Origin: Pavona decussata
Lineage: Eukaryota
Direction of reading: 5' to 3'
DNA length: 64,000 nucleotides
Assembly: GCA_977016875.1 (NCBI GenBank)
Contig: CDRNST010000436.1
Coordinates: forward strand, 6,138,001 to 6,202,000
Numbering within the stretch: position 1 is the first letter of the stretch; each line of letters opens with the position of its first letter. The notes beneath the pieces are model-generated. The model did not search any database. It had not been told where the DNA came from and saw only the letters and a program-made list of their open reading frames with translations. Shown here piece after piece: positions 4,954 through 24,867 of the stretch. Both the position numbers and the translations under genes were made by a program.

Positions 4954-7822
4954 TTACTGGGGATTCGGACCAGGGGTGGTTGATTCAGTGGTGTGCGCTG
5001 CCACAGGGCAGATGAGGAAGACGCCAAAATAGCTGGTGTCCCTGTGCATATAGTAGGACTTTGTGAACGGAATCCGCACGGATATTTTGTCACCTTTTCT
5101 GAGCAAGAACACAGCTCCTTGGTAATTTGTGTTGTATTTCTTCGTCTCGTTAACCACACTGCTGATACTGCGCATGACCGGGTCCTCATTGATGTACGTG
5201 TAGTGTCCCATGAAAAGCGTGTCCCCTGCGTAATAGAACAGTTGGCTGTATACGAAGTAGTAACCCGTTGTACCAATCACCAGGAAACTGTTGCTTACGA
5301 ACTTGATACTTCCGGTTATGTGGCCAAGCCTCCAGTTGGTGATGCGGTGAACTGTGGGAGAAAGAAACAGGTCAAAACCTATTAACGTTTCCATTAAATT
5401 TCACTTGAGGAACATTGAAAAGTGAATAACACCACAGGAAAGTACTTCGATTCGCGAATCGATTGGCTCTGAAGCAGGGCTAACGCTCATTCGAATCTCT
5501 TTACGGTGGCTTTTGTTTACAGTATGTCATTATATCGTTTACATGTCGCAAGTGTGTCAGGAAGATGTTTCTTTTTTCTCAATTGGAAGCAAGAAAAAAT
5601 GACAAAGGAATCAACAAAGCCGACAATCTTGAACACTGCTTCTAAGCTTAACTGAATTTTTACATGTGGCATCTCCTGTCAGAGGACATTGTTCACGAGA
5701 GGCATGCAGTCACCAGAGGTTCCACTTTATGGGGCCAAGGTGAGGCCAGACCAAACGATCACGTGGTTTATATGCGATGACACAATGAAGTTCTCCCTTA
5801 TTATTTGCACGGATTTCATACCAGGGACCCTCTCCATTTAGCAAAATTCGGCGGTTAAACTGATTGAATTGCAAATGGCGGGCGCGGATCAAACGGAAAT
5901 TTTCCGGAACAAATGGAATAACTTTGAAAGTACTTCACTTTTCCTGTTCCAGCCGGTTGGAACAGAAATTACCGTTCCATTTGCGGAAAATCTCCATATC
6001 TACTTTGTTATCCTCTTGCGTCTACCTTTGAGATTCCAAGTTTAAAACGAATGGATAAAGCCTTGCCATTCGACAGTTAGAGTTTACCGAATTTCCAACC
6101 GAAAACTTTGGCTAAATGGAAAGGGCTTCAGAGGTCATTGCTTTGCACGTGGTTCATTGTCTACGTTTAGAAAATTGCATTAACTCACAGCCTTGGTCGT
6201 TGTTAAAAGAAATCTAAAAGAGGCCTCAAAAAAGTCGAAAACTTGTCGAACAAAACTGCTTTGTTATTTAAGTTCTTAAGGCCAAAAAAATTGAACGTCA
6301 TAAAATAACATAAAAAATAAACCAAGAAAAACAACACTAACATTTTGTTCTACCTGTGGGAATGATGTGTTCGCCAACCCCAAAAATATGAGCCGAATCT
6401 GTGAACTGAAATGCAATAAAAGAATATTGACCAGGTATTAGACATCAATAGTCCCCTATCACATAGTACACTGGCTGAAGTCTAGTTTCAGTCTTGGAAA
6501 AATAAACGGCAAAGATAATATTACTTACGCCAATCATAGTGCCTGGTATACCTGTGAAAAGAACAAATTAGAAGTTTACAGCGGTTTTCAAAAGAGTGTA
6601 GTTTCTACTCGAAGATATAAGCTTTCAACTACTCTCCAATTGGAGTGAAAATAAAGTTTCAAGCAATCAATCTAACTTAAAAATGACAACAAACGCTGAC
6701 AAGGCAATGAATCCATCGGAATTTGAACCAAAAACAAGTAAAGGACATCAACCGCGGTAAACAAGAGTGTGAGCAAGTTACGATTGGTTTTAGTTTTACT
6801 GGTTATTGACTGGGGAAGTGGCGCAAGATCTTTTTCCCTCTTTTCAGCAATCACAGAATGAAGCAATACCTATTGAAAGTCAAACTCGAAATATTTCACA
6901 CTATGGCTCTCTTCGCTTATACTAGAGCAAAGACTTCAAAAAGAAAAAAAGTAGCACTTATCCTTGCCGGTTACAATGGTTTTGATTTTTCAACTCAAAT
7001 TGTTTCCCTTAATTTATTGAACTCATGCGTCAGAATTCGCTTTCCTGTGCATAATGGTTAATGTTTGGTGATAGATGATCTAGACGTTTAAATAAGACTG
7101 ATGTTTGTTTTGTTTCAGATGCACTACCTTGGGGTCCACGCCTTCCTTGCTCACCTGAAAGAGAGGCAGCGGAAGTCTTAGTAACAGGTAAGTTTCATAA
7201 AGCCAGGAAAATAAGTTTCAGTGATCACGTAAAAATCCCTCCCCCACCCATCCCTTCCTCTTTCAGTCTCCACACGCCTAACTATAAAAAAGACTATTAG
7301 TGATTCACCGACACGGCACAAAAACGTATTATCTTTGAGCCCTCAAAGTAAAAGTGGACCTTGACGACATAAAGCTATTCTCTCCACTACCTAGTTATTT
7401 CTTTTGGTTTCAAAAAAAAAAGGACTTACTGCATTATATTTTGGGTGCGTATTTTATGTATGATTTACGTTACACCATCACGACAATAGAAGCGGATTGT
7501 TATACCCTTTTCGCCCCTGTCTCCTTTCTCTCCATCTTTTCCATTTTTTCCTGCATCTCCTCTGTCACCTTTAGCACCTGAGACGAGAGACGATAAAGTC
7601 AAACTGATAATAAGGAATGTTCGGTTTATCAACAGAATTGACAACCAAAGATAAATTGGCCACTGTAAAGAGATACGAGTGCTGACGTTTCAAACGTTAG
7701 CCTTTCGTCGATGGATTCCCTCTCACGAAACGTCAGCACTCGAATCTCTTTACGGCGGCCAATTTACCTTTAGTTATCAACTCTGTTGATAAACCGGCTA
7801 AAATTTATTTCTACTCTCCAAA

Positions 7823-14410: not shown

Positions 14411-16055
14411 TGTTGGACCCTTGCCGTTTTATAATGATTTTTCTCACTTTTGTAAAGCGTCTTCGAACCTTCGGATTTTGGCGCTATATAAACTGTCATT
14501 GTAATTGTAATTGTAGTGAGAATACGCATATATACTCTCACTGAGGTTTGAAGGGCGGAAACGCCTGCAAAACGTGGGTCAAACGATTATCTTCGAAAAA
14601 GCTGTTCATTTGTCAGACCGTTCAGTACTGGTACGAAAAGACGCTTCCTTAGCGAAACTATGTACGCTACGTTTGACGCCCTTGTCAAATTTTGTGCAGA
14701 TGCACGTGATATATTTAGTTGGGTAGTCTCACGATCAGCTGCAACTGAAGAAAAAAACCCAAGAACACTTACACTACACGCTTAAATGCAGAAAGACAAT
14801 GAAGTGCAAAGTGTCTTGTCTAAGAAAACAACAAGACTGTAGAGTACCTTTTGCCTTCTTATCTCCAATCTTCCGCTGCGGTTTTTTAAAATTAATTGTT
14901 AAATGATGGAACATTCACACAGTTTCACCACAGAAAGACTGAAAGATGCGAGTGTCACATATATATCTTTACTTCTGTTCCTATCCCAACGTTCACAACT
15001 TTAAAATGCAAAAAAACAGTCCGCGTTTTTGCGTGCGTCAGACGTAAGGACGCGCGATAGATCTGGAGCCAGTAAGTAAAAGGAGAGTGGGGCTGGGGCG
15101 AGAGTGACCGTACATTTTCTTCACGCTTTCGGTAGCTCGCGCCTTCCTCTGCGAGTTTTAAAAGACAAAAAGAAGTTTACTTTCAAAGTCTATAACAGTT
15201 AAGTAACATTTATTGCAAGATTCTACAATAACGAGTAAATGTTCACTCCTTCACCCGTTTTTTTTTTTTAAAAAAACGTATCTAATCTATTTAGCCATTA
15301 AATAACCTCGGTGATCTTCGAAATATTTTAATATTTGGACAATAACTGAGTCGGTGTGCTAGTCATAAATGAGAACTACCAAGAAGGCTTCCTTTATCAT
15401 ATACTTCGACAGTTTAAATTGAACCTGTTCAACAACAAAACTTTTACTAATGGTATGGAAAGTATAACTGAAATCCTTATACAATAAGAATTAATATGAA
15501 AACTCTTTTTAACGGAGAAATTTTGCTTTTTTTAAAACAGAAACATTTTCCCAATGCGTATTAGTTTTGCGTCAGTTTAACTTTATTCTCATGCAAAATA
15601 TATTAATCAACAGAAAAGTGATCTACAAAGATAAAATATCCATCACCCGTTTGCTATGAGCTCATATAATGTCGTGGGCTGGGGTAGACGTCCTCTTATT
15701 TTCATGGCTGAGTACATAGCCTGCGTGGCAGGCGCTAGAAAGAGGAAGGGAGAATGGAAATGGGGCACGCGCGCGACGCGCGGGGACGCGACGCGCGGGG
15801 AAAAGGGAAAAGGAAGTTCTGTCTTACAAAAAGGATAAACTTTTCGACGAGTTTGCAGAATTTTATTAACGTCCCATTTGCATCACGCTACCATGCACAA
15901 TAGTGCATGCTAATCAGGAACACCTAAATCTATAGCAAATAAGACATATCGAAAACAGAAGAAAAAATTACTTATATACAATTTTAACCCAGAAAAAATA
16001 AAAGTAATTCAAGTAGTGTTCGTTTATCCTGCACTGCGATAACACACTAAGAAAT

Positions 16056-19000
16056 TTAGTCACTGGAATACAGCAAAAACGCTCCAAAGAAGCTGGCGTC
16101 AGTTTTCATTTCGTAATTCCTCACGTAAGGTATGCGAACAGAAATAGTATCGTTCGCTCGTAGCAGAAACACTCCACCATGATACTTTGTGTTGTACTTG
16201 GTGCTGGGAGTCACAGAGCTTCCCACACTTTGCATGACATTCCTGTCGTTGATGTAAGTGTAGTGAGCCATAACTGGCAAGCGGGAGTCGAAGTAGTACA
16301 TTTGGCTGTATATGAAGTAGTGACCGGCCCTCGCGACTCTGATGACACCTCTCTTGTACTGAATGGAACCCACTTTGTGATGGACAATCCAGTTTGTTAT
16401 AAGTAGATAAACTGTCGTGAAAAATTGAATAGAATATGAAATGAGGGATTTGTTCAGCACCCATAACCTTCTTGCATATCGAGCTCATTTTCCTCGATTT
16501 TCGTGTTTACAGACCATGAAAGTGCATCAAAGCCAAGCTTTCTGCCGAGTTTCTTGCACTTAGTGTTTCTCATTTACCTCAAAAGATTCTACATATCTTT
16601 TCATCGGTTCCAATTCGGGTCTTGACAATCTGCGAGCCAGCGAGCCAGCGAGCCATGCGAGGCAGACGTGCGAGGCACTCAGGTTAGCCTAAAAAACACT
16701 CCGGTTAGCCTAAAATAGCTTAAATAGCTCCCCGGTTAGCTTAACGGTTAGCATTTATGTTGGGGGCTGTTCATGCCTCGCAAGCCTCGCATGTTTTGTT
16801 CATGCCTCGCACGTTTGGCTCGCATGGCTCGCTGGCTCGCTGGCTCGCACATTGGCAACACTCTTCCAATTCACGAGTCTGACATCTTAAAGCATGTCCA
16901 TTGAAATGAAGTTCTTCAGGGGTATTAAAAACCTTGTGGTGTGGGTTTTACTGAAATATTATTTATGTAACATTTCAGTGCCCACTTTCAAACTTTGTGC
17001 TCGTATGAAAGGATAAAGAATGAATCAGTAACTGAACACTGCTTACGGGGATTGCTAAGGCTTGTATCATCTCCTGTCAGGTGGATACTTTCTGCGACCT
17101 AACAGAACAAATTCAAGTGGTTAAATTCAGTTATGGTCAGTAAAAGCAAAAATGCATTACATGCTTGGTAACCCAAGATAAAGAGGCACTCTAGGTACAG
17201 GCTGCCCATCACGGCCTGTTCATAATCCGGATACTGCAGCATGAAGGATTTAAGATTATCACTACTTTACACTCCCCCGTTATGAACAAAAACATTTAAG
17301 CTGGAGAGAATTCTTACCGCTGTTGGTGGTGGTTTGACTTTCTCTCCTAAAATACAAACAGATACTCAGTTAAGTCCTGCAAGTGCGAACAGGTAAGAAA
17401 GAGGTGGAACGCTTATGCTTATATGAAGAGAAAACGTTATCAATTTTAACCTCAATAACAAACAACGAGAACCCCTTATGTAAATTGTTAATCCGTTTTC
17501 CTTCGAAATCCCAACTCTCTGGTGTCTTTTCAGGAGACCCCTCTAACGAGTTCCGTTTACTGGCCAGTCAAAATAAAGGAACTGTGGGAAGCGGTTGGTC
17601 AAGTGCAATTTCGCGTTCACCACCTTTTAATTAATTCGCCCGATAAAAACAATTTAAATAATCGGAAAGTTTTGAAAAATATATCAATAAAAATTGTCAA
17701 AGACTCATAAGCAGCTTTGCGAAGGGAAAACCGTAACGCATGCCGCGCTAAAGCTGTGATAACCCTAAACTAAAACCACCCGGTTTTGTTTTGCCTTGTT
17801 GATATTTTTTGTTTTTGTTGTTCGGCCCCATGCTTGTTACTTGCTCTATCTTCATTCTTTCTTCGTCGTCACCCAGGACCCTTTCAACATTGCTAATTCC
17901 AACCTCGTTCCCAGGGTCTCTCCTCTTCACTGTCCCAAGGGAGCGTGAAGAGGAGGGAAGCCTGAGAAAAATGTTTTGTGTGATCGCCGCGAGTCTCCTA
18001 GTTGCCTAGTTGTTAGACCTTTCGAGCTGTGCTTGGAAGTTCATGTCTTCGAATAAACAATCAATTTTTGTCTTTGTTCCAACGCGCATGATTCGTTCAA
18101 CCCTACAGCATTTTGTATGTCATGTTATTACCTTCTATTCCGGTAAAACCCAGCGAAAACGCTCCGAAAAAGCTTCCTACTTCATCCATGTAGTAACTCT
18201 TGGCGAATGGAATGTGCACCGAGATGGTGTCTTTTTCTTGAAGCAAAAAAACCCCGCCATGGTACTTGGTGTTGTATTTCTTAGAGAAGCTAACAACGCT
18301 CCCCTGACTCCCTAGAACCCTATCACGATTGATGTAGGTATAATGACCCATTTGTGCAGAGGTGCCATCGTAGTAATGCATTTGACTGTATATGAAGTAG
18401 TACCCAGTCTTCTTGACCTCTATGTATCCCGTTGTGTCGTGGTACAAGATACTGCCTTCTCTGTGCCTTAAGTGCCAGTTCGTTATGCGGTTCGTTGTGC
18501 GGAACTGGGAATCTGGTGGCGAAACCATAATTTGTTAGTTTCCAAGTGGCGTGTTCTTGAACCTTGCGAGAAAGGCTCGGTGCATGGTCAGAGCGTACTT
18601 GAAATAGTTCAGATTTGTCTCATCTTTCAGTTTGTTACCAAGGCCATTCCACATGACAGCCCCCTATAGCTAAACGCCCTCAAAGCAGCATCAATACGGG
18701 ACCTGGGCACAAAAACACTGTTTGAGGAGCCTCGTACATTACATGAATGAAGCCGGGAGGTTGGTTTAAACATATTCTTCAAACCTTCAGGATGGAGATT
18801 ATTCAGAGATTTGAGTACACTTGTTGTGAGCTGCTTAGAGCGTCTTTGCTCGAGAGTATCCCATCCTAGGTCTTGGAGTTTATCCACAGATCTAGTATTA
18901 TAACCACTAAATGTAACTGAATCAGGAATAATTCTCCATAAATCAGCTGAAGGTTAAATAAACAATCAACTTGGTAAAATACGTTTTTAAGGTTCCAATA

Positions 19001-22000
19001 GAAGTGGTAAAACTGATGGCAATTAGATAATTAGATGATTCTCACTGATCATTTGTCTATTTTTCTGATACAAAAGAGCGAAAAAACTCGATAGACATAC
19101 TTGGATGTCTTGACATGTAGAACTCGTGTTACGATACTGGAATAACTTGAGCAGAAATTTCCCACTTCAGAAATTGTTAAGAGACTTGTACGAGCTAGGG
19201 ATTGTGGGATTCTTGAGAAGCATAGCTCTTGTTAAATAGTTTTAACCTAAAATAGTATTTTCTATACAGCTGACTACCAAGAAATGTATCATTCATCGGT
19301 GCACTGTCTACCCAAACGATCCCATCATCCCTAACTTGCACCAGTCTCCCCTTTAGTTTCTGGAGTGGGGAGTAGTACAGAAACTGAAAAAAGGAACGGG
19401 AGAAGGAGACAGGGATGAGAAGTATCTCACTTCAATCCACAGAACAAATTATCCACTGGGTCATTACAAACAAGGTTAAAAAATCCAGTCTACATTTATT
19501 ATTCATACATCGATACTGTATTCTTCGTCCATCACCAGTCAAATGGATGCTTTCAAGACTCTAAAAAATCAAAATATTTATCACTCGTTAGCGTAGTCAG
19601 AATGAGGGAGACTTCAATTAAATAAATGTGAATGTTTTAGTTGATTTCCGTAAGGCATTCGATCTTATTGATCACAATATCTTAGTGCGTAAACTCTCAG
19701 ATTATTATGATATTCCGAACCACATCTATCTCTGTTTAACAGCGACTTTGCTACTTACCGGGGACCCAGGGACGCCACGTGGTCCTGAAGAAAAACATTT
19801 ACATTGTATATGTAAATTAACTCCAGAAAATTGTTAAACTTTAAGAGTTATGGTACACATCTCACAATAACGTTTTGTTAACAACAAACGAAGAGAATCT
19901 CTGAATATTCTGACTCACATCTTGATTAAAATTTGCCTTGGCCTTTTTGCAATCCGCTTCAGTTTTTGTCCAACCTTTACGGACATCTTACACCACAAAA
20001 AATATAAAAGTTTCGAACTGCAAGTATAGTTTTGGGCTCACCCACGGCCCACTAACACATTTACTTGTGAAGGGCATCAAAAATGACTTTTCATTTTGTG
20101 CGATGGGATTATCATAATCATAATGAAATAAACAGCTTATCTGGCATTCTGACCTGGCATTCCCATGGGTCCTTGGGGACCTCTATCTCCCTTGAAGCCC
20201 GGCGGCCCTTGCGGTCCAACAGCACCAATAGGTCCTGGAAAACCTGAAATCATTGATTGATAACTGTACACTGTGGTGTGGAACTCATCAAACAACACGA
20301 ACTAAAAGGTTAGTGTCATGCAAAAGATGAAAAGGAAGCAGCTAAAGTAAAGCTGAGTATTTTTCGGCTTGTAATGTAAATTTGTCCTGAAGTGTGAAGA
20401 ACTACGAAGACGTGATTTCTATGACGATGCTACTGTTGTATGATATTCCCGAAGTTTCTTCTCAGGAACGAGTGGAGGTTGCGTTAAATTCTCCTTTTTG
20501 AGAAAATCGTGGGTTTTTTTTTTTCTATTTGCAGTCAACAAATATTTTTTGCTATAACATATGTATGGGTGCACAATTTGTTAGGCGAAGCAAAATATAT
20601 AAATAAATCAGCCTATAGCATTTTGTCCACATATTTCGATCCTGCTACCCCTTAATAGAACCTCAGTAGTAAACCCACTGCGTTAAGGAAAGTAGCACCA
20701 GTTTTCGAAGAAAATGAAATCCGGCATTACCTTTAGCACCACTCGGTCCAGGAGGGCCGGGACGACCAGTTCTTCCCATTCTTCCTCTCCTTCCTTCTCT
20801 TCCTCGAATTCCTACAGTTGAAAGATAATGTAACACTTTGTAAGGGCTGAGTTGATTTATTTCATGAAGAATTCGGGCCTTGCTTCACAAAATATTGGAT
20901 AAAAACACTGTACATAACCTCAGCTGTGCAGTCAGCCTCTCCCCCTTAGTTGGAAAAATACAGTGGTGAGAAGGGGGCGGAGAGGGTAGGGGTGGTGGCG
21001 TCATATAAGCCACATTTGTATGTCTTACCTCAAAAAGCTATTTTAGTATGAATTAGAGAATTTTTCTTGCCTTTTAGTCTCCATAATGAAGTATGGTTTT
21101 GCCTTTATGGCCTAAAATAGAGTTCTGTTCTGTCTACTAGACTAATATTGCACAATAAATCTTGTGGTTGGTTAGGCATTTTAAAGATGTATATTTTCGT
21201 CCGAATTTTTAACGCTGGGCAAATTAAACATGTTTTCCCACATTAAACACTCTTTGTATTCTGATTGCGATTGGTTTGGCTTTATAAAAAGGACACTAAA
21301 AGTGTGAACTCTGGTCTCACTTGGTGTAATCTGAGTTTTCGTTTCAGTCCAATTCTACTGTCCAAAGGGTCAATTACCAATGTGCAATTCTTTATTTGAT
21401 TAAGTCATCACAGATTATGCAGTCTTCTAAAAATATAAATTTTCGGTGACAGTTTTTGCGCACCTCAGCAAAATCACGACTTGAATCGAAATTGTTAAGG
21501 GGTGGGGTGTGGGGGGAAGACGAAGTCGCCAGCTTTAGAAGGAACACTGGAGAAGGAAATAAACACCCCCCCCCCCCCCTCCCCGCTGTCCCATTCCAAC
21601 TACATGTCTGAGTCTTCCTCCCCTGCTTTGATCTTGTTGTTTGTTATCATTCTTGTCATAATTCTTCTCAATAACAACATAAAGTATGTAATTGTTATTT
21701 GACTGAAATACTAGAGTACTAACCAACACAAGTACAGGATCCTTCAGCGCTTCTCCGAATACGAGCTGTCTCTGAATCCTAAAACGTTTGTACAGCACGA
21801 TCAACACTGAGTTTGAAAATTTCGTATCTTTTATATGACTACTAAATGTAAGTTGTGGGGTTTGAATGAATCCCCGAGGCCAGCAAAGGTAAAACGAACT
21901 CCTTACCTGGATATCCCCAACTTCCTTTCCGCTCTGCAATGCGTCGATGACCTTCTGATGCTCTCGAATTTGTATTTTTAGCCAGGCGATTTCTTTGTAA

Positions 22001-22098
22001 GTGTAGACACCGAAAACAATCCCCGAACAGGCTAACATCAAACAGCAAAGCAAAACTGGCAGTAGCTGAGCTCCGTTTTGGTTTTGTTTCTTTTCCAT
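16056..22098 (-). CDS. Collagen-containing TNF-superfamily ligand with two tandem THDs, cluster gene 2, about 437 aa, 10 exons
   Basis: Exons, total 1314 nt: 21907-22098 (TM), 21724-21778 (RIRR, CTC), 20731-20811, 20154-20243, 19759-19784 (collagen), 19509-19560 (SLESIHLTG), 18132-18512 (THD1, ends at GAAG|GTAATA donor), 17318-17346 (linker GEKVKPPPTA), 17047-17098 (VAESIHLTG), 16056-16411 (THD2, ends FFGAFLLYSSD*). Confidence 0.8.
16617..16863. mobile_element. Mutator-like MITE with 9-bp TSD
   Basis: Long TIRs with gcgagcca subrepeats. Direct repeat ttccaattc at 16608-16616 and 16864-16872. Confidence 0.8.
18627..18900 (-). mobile_element. LINE (CR1/L2-like) ORF2 C-terminal fragment
   Basis: LQDLGWDTLEQRR...NVRGSSN..RAFSYRG motifs. 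Confidence 0.75.
19628..19722 (+). mobile_element. LINE reverse-transcriptase fragment
   Basis: VLVDFRKAFDLIDHNILVRKL, matching the RT motif DxxKAFD. Confidence 0.7.
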
Positions 22099-23845: not shown

Positions 23846-24207
23846 TTAAGTTGTTACAGGGTGAAGAAGAAACGCACCAAAATAGCTATAAGTTGGTTCC
23901 ATTAAATAGACTCTTGAAAAAGGAGTTCGTACAGATATATGATCAGTGGCGTTCAAAAAAACTACGCAACCGTTATAATTGGTGCTGTACTTTCTATCTT
24001 TGCTAACAACAGCAGATGTACTCTGCATCAAAATGCGCGAGTTGACATACAACTGATGTGTCATCTGGTATGCCAAGCCGTCATGGTAATACATCTGGGA
24101 ATACACATAGTAAAATCCAGCTGTCTGTATTTGAATGGTCCCGTGACTGTACTGAAGTCTGCCTGATCTGTGTTGCTCTTGCCAGTTCTTGACTGTGCGT
24201 CTACCTA
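23846..24207 (-). CDS. Additional intact THD terminal exon, probably an alternative last exon of gene 3
   Basis: Acceptor TTTGTTTCCAAACAG at 24208, phase 1 like the other THD exons. Open frame ...KNWQEQH..AGFYYVYSQMYY..YNGCVVFLNATDHISV..SYFGAFLLHPVTT*. I found no 52-nt strand-A exon of its own between 24208 and 24868. Confidence 0.72.
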
Positions 24208-24867
24208 CTGTTTGGAAACAAATACAGCCTATGTTGAAAAATCCATGGTCAGAGATGGCAGAAAAATTAGGTGTGCCAGGCATCGTTTGACAAGCTTACA
24301 AGATTGTGATGCCGACATGTTATTCGATTCAATTCACTGCAATTTAAGGCTCGAACATGAGAAAAATCGTCCACGTTGTTGATATCACAGGCTGCGCATG
24401 GATATGAATCAAATGCCAATCAGATGAAGAGAAACCGACAAGAGGCACAAATCAGGCAGCATCTAGACCACAGACCAACTGGACAGCGGCATGTACAGCG
24501 CAACTCTACAGCCTTTCAAAGGATAACCCACAAGATTATACAGTTAGATATCAAGTGCAGTCAAAACTTCAGTTACCTAATAAATAAAGCACAGGCCAAA
24601 TAAGAGCCGGAAACGTCTGAGTTTAGTCATCCGTAAGGCTTTTGGCACTAACAGAAAGAGACTAGGATAGCGAGTGAGGTCCTTACGTCTGTAAATACCA
24701 GAAAAGTTTTAAGTTCTCTGCTACCGATGGATCTTTAGGATCACACTAATTTGGTACGTTTTGACTGTACAAAACGTGAACGCTTCCTTTTATTATCATG
24801 GCCCATAGCGACTTCAAAGGAGGGCACAAATCACCGTCTTCTTCGTCTGTGAAACCTTCCGAAGTTA

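Follow-up and report, generated by a model that had tools for sequence, protein, structure and literature searches.

The window analysed here, a 64,000-nucleotide (nt) stretch of the genome of the coral Pavona decussata (G000:C436:6138001-6202000 in a 602-Mb assembly), carries a gene, here called gene 2, whose spliced transcript places two different TNF homology domains, THD1 and THD2, one behind the other in a single collagen-stalked chain. The gene runs on the minus strand from an ATG at 22098 to a TAA at 16056 in ten exons, with AG acceptors and GT donors throughout, and these sum to 1314 nt, encoding in frame 437 amino acids (aa) and a stop, the length that an earlier reading of the sequence alone had predicted. 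The predicted chain has, in order, a membrane anchor, a furin-type RIRR site and a CxC motif, after which 22 Gly-X-Y triplets lead to THD1, and a linker of about 20 residues joins THD1 to THD2. We are highly confident that this tandem-THD, protein-coding transcript is real. The broader reading, of an expressed and conserved type II ligand of the EDA-like kind with two different THDs in tandem, together with the origin and assembly proposed below, we regard as probable. The features of gene 2 are listed below, the junctions being those seen in contigs of four public sequencing runs (X1, X5, X6 and X8, drawn from four studies and no more than three samples) that were placed on positions 16000-21999.

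Exon 1, 21907..22098, minus strand: ATG, 11-aa cytoplasmic tail, predicted membrane anchor LPVLLCCLMLACSGIVFGV and stalk; junction 21907/21778 in four runs.
Exon 2, 21724..21778, minus strand: furin-type site RIRR followed by S, and CxC motif SCTCV, directly before the collagen; junctions on both sides in four runs.
Exon 3, 20731..20811, minus strand: collagen, 9 Gly-X-Y triplets, strongly basic (GRR, GRM, GRT); junctions seen.
Exon 4, 20154..20243, minus strand: collagen, 10 Gly-X-Y triplets; junctions seen.
Exon 5, 19759..19784, minus strand: collagen, 3 triplets, 26 nt, phase 1 to 0; junctions 20154/19784 and 19759/19560.
Exon 6, 19509..19560, minus strand: 52 nt, first strand of THD1 (A-strand exon); junction 19509/18512 in four runs.
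Exon 7, 18132..18512, minus strand: body of THD1, 381 nt, with the tail SLGFTGIE after FGAF leading to a phase-1 donor, GTAATA after a final G.
Retained-intron stop, 18103..18105, minus strand: TAG, which would terminate a THD1-only protein if the intron were left unspliced.
Exon 8, 17318..17346, minus strand: 29-nt linker exon (EKVKPPPTA), phase 1 to 0; junctions on both sides in four runs.
Exon 9, 17047..17098, minus strand: 52 nt, first strand of THD2 (VAESIHLTGDDTSLSNP), with counterparts in the coral loci L002, L003, L004-6 and L007 described below.
Exon 10, 16056..16411, minus strand: body of THD2 and TAA stop.
Candidate polyadenylation signal, 15862..15867, minus strand: first AATAAA 3' of the THD2 stop; contigs extend past 16000.

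Both THD exons are recognised as complete TNF domains by Pfam (PF00229, gathering cut-off 23), THD1 with E 1.3e-9 and 38.6 bits at 18133-18510 and THD2 with E 1.6e-15 and 57.6 bits at 16059-16409, and the two are 57% identical. The paralogues in the window stop directly after the FGAF motif, as in the neighbouring gene 3, where the sequence FGAFLLHRM is followed by a stop, whereas exon 7 of gene 2 reads past FGAF to the donor at 18132. The linker that joins the domains is 20 residues long and polar or proline-rich. When tblastn was run with every exon, no membrane-anchor, ATG-bearing or collagen exon was found between 18131 and 16412, and the window shows no separate 5' exons for THD2; with a second anchor absent between the THDs, both domains are predicted to be extracellular. 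There is likewise no AATAAA between 18131 and 17347 and none for about 470 nt after the stop at 18103, one ATTAAA being present at 17631. On all of these points, from the two complete domains and the stop-less THD1 exon to the consistent splice sites and phases of the three exons downstream, the paralogues that stop after FGAF, the missing intervening exons and the missing AATAAA (claimed for some 400 bp), the sequence-only reading is borne out; the first A-strand exon at 19560-19509 is a detail that it did not contain.

The amino-terminal half of the predicted chain follows an EDA-like plan. A single hydrophobic stretch follows the 11-aa polar tail in exon 1, with a Kyte-Doolittle 19-residue maximum of 2.47 over residues 13-31, which indicates a type II topology with one N-terminal anchor. 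Upstream of the collagen lies a predicted furin cleavage site of the form R-x-K/R-R, which recurs in orthologues as RIRK, RIRR or RVRR followed by C-x-C, and exons 3-5 encode their 22 Gly-X-Y triplets without interruption between anchor and THD. EDA-like ligands carry one THD per chain, and it is here that gene 2 departs from them, its transcript joining two.

The transcript contigs contain all nine introns as GT..AG junctions on the strand of the gene, each in four or three of the runs. The three junctions that link THD1 to THD2, 18132/17346, 17318/17098 and 17047/16411, which the sequence-only reading had proposed as its decisive check, are present in all four with the frame intact, and two single contigs, one of 751 nt from X5 and one of 1588 nt from X6, each extend from the 3' untranslated region through THD2 and both small exons and into THD1 for 77-146 nt. 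Exon bins are 10- to 20-fold deeper than the adjacent intron bins. In every run the sole partner seen for the 17346 acceptor is the 18132 donor, and junctions that skip THD1, from a collagen exon to 17346 or 17098, were found in none of the four; disuse of the 18132 donor and skipping of THD1 were the two outcomes that would have overturned the earlier proposal, and neither is seen in these runs. A retrocopy as the source of the junctions was considered and set aside, since THD2 is present in the 602-Mb assembly as one 100% copy, with no second near-identical copy.

The arrangement extends to other corals. The best library match to the THD2 exon is 75% identical and lies in an open frame on a coral contig, and in L002, in L004-6, which are TARA Pacific coral contigs, and in L007 (Stylophora pistillata) a stop-less THD1 is followed by a linker exon, then by an A-strand exon of 52 nt and finally by THD2. 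At every tandem locus compared, a phase-1 donor lies 8-10 codons past FGAF and the linker exon measures 29-32 nt. In L002 the THD1-like exon continues past FGAF with LVRALDLEIQ to a phase-1 donor, GTAAAC after a G, and is followed by a 32-nt linker exon, the 52-nt A-strand exon and THD2; in L004 the linker counterpart is also 32 nt, and two extra Gly-X-Y exons stand between the THDs. The partial locus L003 has a stop-less THD1 and a second A-strand exon, its contig ending 600 nt later, before any THD2 is visible. The extra exons of L004 (5738-5846 and 6296-6359, phase 1) fall after THD1 and ahead of the linker exon, and if both were spliced in, the predicted chain would read collagen-THD1-collagen-THD2; that locus also has an AATAAA, at about 5290, after the read-through stop of THD1.

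In a maximum-likelihood tree from which five long-branch rows (P0220, P0077, L004_11676, W_24193 and P0221) were left out, four THD2 sequences form one clade with support of 100/99.7; in an earlier tree that included the long-branch rows, THD2 did not resolve. Pairwise ratios of nonsynonymous to synonymous substitution (dN/dS) are 0.11-0.22 for THD2 and 0.24-0.35 for THD1, with a pairwise dS between the window and the other corals of at least 1. Low dN/dS combined with high dS points to THD2 as an old coding exon under constraint that stands behind a stop-less THD1 in each of these lineages and evolves under purifying selection. The exon plan is retained in distant corals, and transcript support, conservation in several coral lineages and purifying selection together argue that the architecture is used rather than accidental.

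A number of observations weigh against this reading. That the four runs are RNA was initially a guess and rests on the splice junctions, whose presence indicates that the runs hold spliced RNA. Contigs break at variant sites within THD1 and none covers the whole 381-nt exon, so that continuity from exon 1 to THD2 is pieced together from overlapping contigs, which by their nature cannot show transcript ends; the tandem product is known here from genes and transcript contigs, the protein itself being predicted. Nor is the layout universal: in Porites lutea two gene-2-like copies stop after FGAFLVHE and are without the THD2 module, and in Montipora the gene-2-like first exon leads, with no collagen in between, to another kind of THD. 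Contigs that cross the 18132 donor unspliced are found in three of the four runs and in X1 approach the depth of the spliced form (k-mer depth 14.3 against 17.5); they may represent pre-mRNA, or else a THD1-only isoform of minor abundance that may exist alongside the spliced one.

Carried further, the unspliced contigs and the single-THD orthologues of Porites could mean that the working product is THD1 alone, made by retaining the intron and ending at the 18103 stop, with the spliced tandem a tolerated read-through chimera that takes in a decaying gene fragment. We consider this unlikely, given that spliced contigs are far deeper than unspliced in the other runs (72 against 2.4 in X5, 55 against 4.9 in X6 and 47 against 0 in X8), that other introns have comparably low unspliced cover of a kind that looks like pre-mRNA, that no AATAAA follows the stop within the 470 nt noted above, and that THD2 is intact, under purifying selection and in frame in at least four lineages despite a 3-nt change in the length of the linker exon. 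It is very improbable that the two THDs are mutually exclusive ends chosen from the collagen exons: gene 3 and its Montipora orthologue do switch between alternative THD exons at their ends, and the collagen donor at 20154 is phase-compatible with the acceptor at 17346, yet none of the four runs contains such a junction and in them 17346 pairs only with 18132. To an artefact of genome misassembly, a processed copy or misplaced paralogue contigs we give almost no credence. The THD of gene 3 is 89% identical in DNA to THD1, and at several variant positions of THD1 the runs show the residue of gene 3, but the junction contigs match at 95% or more on both sides, their flanks are unique in the linker exon and THD2, the assembly has its one 100% copy of THD2, and the same order recurs in independent assemblies of other corals. 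An expressed tandem-THD gene remains the preferred reading.

As to how such a gene might have arisen, we infer that a two-step fusion is the simplest history. A downstream collagen-TNF paralogue would have shed the exons for its membrane anchor; loss of the stop codon in the upstream gene, with gain of a phase-1 donor, would have fused both genes, the linker exon being a probable remnant of the last collagen exon of the paralogue. The linker exon matches that exon in length class (29-32 nt, against 26 nt in gene 2), in phases and in position, and pocilloporid corals still have Gly-X-Y exons at the linker site, one of them forming part of the linker in a Stylophora RefSeq isoform, X1. A 27-nt deletion relative to gene 3 was considered as the means by which the THD1 stop was lost and was dropped; DNA similarity between the two genes ends at FGAF, and any alignment downstream of that point is untrustworthy. 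In detail, the similarity between 18152-18556 of gene 2 and 24881-25270 of gene 3 is limited to the A-strand exon (77%) and to the THD exon together with 44 nt of the intron before it (89%).

Structural work was carried out on the Stylophora pistillata orthologue A0A2B4SVX8 (P0222) rather than on the product of the window itself. In its AlphaFold2 monomer model, with a predicted template modelling score (pTM) of 0.62, both domains are beta-sandwiches with a predicted local distance difference test (pLDDT) value mostly of 70-94, and the linker, with pLDDT below 50, is predicted to be disordered. The modelled domains match EDA, BAFF, APRIL and TRAIL, in keeping with the jelly-roll fold, and among solved single-domain structures EDA-A1 (1RJ7) comes closest, at 26-29% identity and with a target-normalised TM-score of 0.80. 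Over both domains together the top PDB match is 4ZCH, a single-chain APRIL-BAFF-BAFF aligned over 277 columns with a query-normalised TM-score of 0.71, and there are further two-domain matches to 5HKJ, a single-chain C1q head, and 4DOU, a single-chain adiponectin. These resemble the two-domain model in having neighbouring protomers connected by short linkers and differ from the coral chain in being engineered and in containing three domains per chain, where the coral chain has two. A complex prediction with three copies of residues 100-378 of the orthologue, covering THD1, linker and THD2, gave a score of 0.25 and a mark of 0.32 and is taken neither for nor against binding.

In EDA, furin releases the ectodomain and the collagen stalk holds three chains together. 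By the same route, furin would release the ectodomain of gene 2 at RIRR, and the CxC motif and collagen helix would zip three chains so that six THDs are presented, in what the sequence-only reading had proposed as a hexavalent or bispecific ligand. The assembly that we prefer is one of two stacked heads, (THD1)3 and (THD2)3, which would cluster six receptors or bridge two receptor types. The preference draws on Duokines, in which two ligand domains are arranged as TNFSF1-linker-TNFSF2 with a linker of 15-20 residues and three chains give a homotrimeric, hexavalent and bifunctional molecule (PMC6140609); the two heads can form there because a protomer has both its N and its C terminus on one side. 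By this analogy we give two homotrimeric heads an about even chance. We advance more tentatively the fuller proposal that stony corals possess a natural Duokine, retained over lineages with saturated synonymous sites, a furin-shed, collagen-zipped trimer whose (THD1)3 and (THD2)3 would bind different TNF receptors of the coral set.

The same transcript could instead produce mixed heads, with THD1 and THD2 of one chain adjoining in the same trimeric head and a THD of another chain in the third place, such that three chains would form either a pair of mixed heads, one 2:1 and the other 1:2, or larger complexes linked as in a daisy chain. This arrangement is what the AlphaFold2 model depicts, packing THD1 beside THD2 as neighbouring protomers of a single-chain trimer, and that packing, which speaks against stacked heads, is reflected in the single-chain trimers 4ZCH, 5HKJ and 4DOU being the best matches; the linker, at about 20 aa, is long enough, and intra-chain THD pairs appear in the predicted models of a preprint on multi-THD ligands (10.1101/2024.07.27.603686). 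A monomer prediction made without a partner chain nevertheless tends to fill the trimer interface from the same chain, the three-fold symmetry of a collagen helix is not matched by chains of two domains, and Duokines with similar linkers form two homotrimers (PMC6140609). We therefore see mixed heads as a serious but doubtful alternative to the two homotrimeric heads that we favour.

The sequence-only reading knew of no natural example of such a ligand, and on this point it does not stand, as the Stylophora pistillata orthologue is public (PFX34031.1 / UniProt A0A2B4SVX8, 378 aa, named 'TNF ligand superfamily member 10'), with RefSeq entries XP_022792743.1 ('ectodysplasin-A-like', isoform X1) and XP_022792748.1 ('TNFSF10-like', isoform X2), and multi-THD ligands have been predicted elsewhere (10.1101/2024.07.27.603686). 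The public Stylophora proteins, which were recovered via cluster and word-index searches, contain two TNF stretches by Pfam. Like gene 2, the orthologue has a first exon (about 55% identity), RIRK-CTC, collagen, a stop-less THD1, a short linker and a THD2 in the same clade; it differs in its shorter collagen, in a linker that may carry an extra Gly-X-Y exon (isoform X1), and in being named after single-domain vertebrate ligands. In the literature searched, no papers cite the Stylophora accessions, and no description of this tandem ligand was found in the literature on those accessions, on coral TNF ligands or on tunicate TNFSF. The library protein search with the THD2 exon listed 150 representatives, and among these there is no full-length tandem protein of P. 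decussata itself, two TNF stretches being present only in P0077 (Ptychodera) and a 189-aa fragment.

Vertebrate EDA-A1/A2 share with gene 2 the type II anchor, the furin site before a chain-bundling collagen stalk and the C-terminal THD; unlike gene 2 they have one THD per chain and choose their receptor via a 2-aa splice variant, not a second domain. Predicted TNFSF genes with several THDs in one reading frame, as in gene 2, have been reported from Hydra vulgaris (9, 4 and 9 THDs), Crassostrea virginica (2) and Darwinula stevensoni (3), and were interpreted as in-frame duplications or paralogue fusions (10.1101/2024.07.27.603686). In contrast to gene 2, these cases come from predicted proteomes and AlphaFold models with no transcript evidence cited, some place a membrane anchor ahead of every THD, and the preprint neither mentions a collagen stalk nor names the tandem ligand of corals (10.1101/2024.07.27.603686). 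Duokines resemble gene 2 in placing two different THDs in each chain with a linker of similar length (PMC6140609), and are unlike it in being engineered, with glycine-serine linkers and without a collagen stalk, so a shared assembly is presumed rather than observed. A predicted protein of the hemichordate Ptychodera flava (XP_070553352.1, P0077, 570 aa) likewise combines an anchor and collagen with two TNF stretches recognised by Pfam; it differs in a spacer of about 110 aa, an identity of only 34% and a long branch outside the coral sequences, and could represent a tandem-THD ligand that arose independently in a deuterostome. The tandem THD is best described as a variant of the EDA-like and multi-THD ligands and not an unrecorded architecture, to which transcript and evolutionary evidence are added here.

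TNF ligands are taught as trimers of chains with a single domain each, and many TNF receptors need clustering, for which engineers add valency by means of single-chain, hexavalent and Duokine formats. The coral ligand, which brings its own linker and stalk, is a natural template for the design of multivalent ligands and a tractable case of the fusion of neighbouring genes through loss of a stop codon and of the 5' exons of the downstream gene. Coral TNF signalling has been linked to heat stress and apoptosis, and the coral TNF receptor set is greatly expanded; the tandem ligand is a candidate regulator in this signalling, and the public names 'TNFSF10' and 'ectodysplasin-A-like' conceal its two-THD architecture. 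If the natural Duokine proposal were true, one secreted molecule would cluster six receptors or bridge two receptor types or two cells, and the locus would represent a natural experiment in diversifying ligand valency and specificity, with tandem THDs in gene 2 and alternative last exons in gene 3.

Gene 2 lies within an array of collagen-stalked, EDA-like ligand genes, with seven THD exons in the window, all on the minus strand, and the closest named proteins to the window are from Porites, Montipora, Stylophora, Pocillopora and Acropora. In gene 3 (23864-25971, minus strand) two terminal THD exons share one A-strand exon at 25971-25921; THDa (25224-24870) carries the FGAFLLHRM ending and its stop, and THDb (24217-23864) is entered through a phase-1 acceptor and has a separate stop. 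The same THD pair is present in Stylophora (L007, 961-1314 and 2261-2614), and in Montipora capricornis the RefSeq isoforms X3 and X1 share an N-terminus and collagen and end in a THDa-type (82% identity) or a THDb-type (63%) domain, so that mutually exclusive THD ends are annotated in another coral. Six amino-acid variants of THD1 in the runs (V277E, K259N, Q257R, G236E, S217A and H211Y) equal the residues of gene 3, which indicates either that gene conversion is still segregating or that some paralogue contigs were placed on the wrong gene.

In Porites lutea (L008, OY283133.1, 5314476-5339233) the two gene-2-like copies, of 263 aa each, stand in tandem and are followed by a gene resembling gene 1 of the cluster, and a Porites evermanni gene model of 598 aa (CAH3190916.1), which fuses gene-2-like and gene-1-like parts, second membrane anchor included, has the look of a fusion made in annotation. 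P0205 (Logan transcripts, 244 aa) and P0241 (Montipora foliosa, 591 aa) lead from a gene-2-like first exon to a gene-1-like THD without collagen; judging from these predicted proteins, the exon sets of the cluster are re-paired differently in Acroporidae.

Within gene 2 itself, a junction in X1 and X6 skips 205 nt inside THD2 (16094-16300), with non-canonical ends and 21 letters on its shorter side, and is probably a contig chimera. Two intronic stretches, 16600-16800 in intron 9 and 17899-17930 in intron 7, reach contig depths of up to 750 with many loose ends in all runs, the first containing an inverted GCGAGCC-rich repeat and an opposite-strand junction; both look like dispersed repeats, perhaps similar to miniature inverted-repeat transposable elements. 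Intron 6, nearly 1 kb long and situated between the A-strand exon and THD1, includes at 18560-19000 (minus strand) a sequence that resembles the tail of a retroelement open frame, an apparent insertion that gives the intron this length. Elsewhere in the assembly, L001 (G000:C117) has a pair of THD exons at 5420-5773 and 7074-7478, 1.3 kb apart, which both stop after FGAF and can at most serve as alternative ends and not as an in-frame tandem, and G000:C60 holds an array of at least 23 THD exons at 1.88-2.57 Mb.

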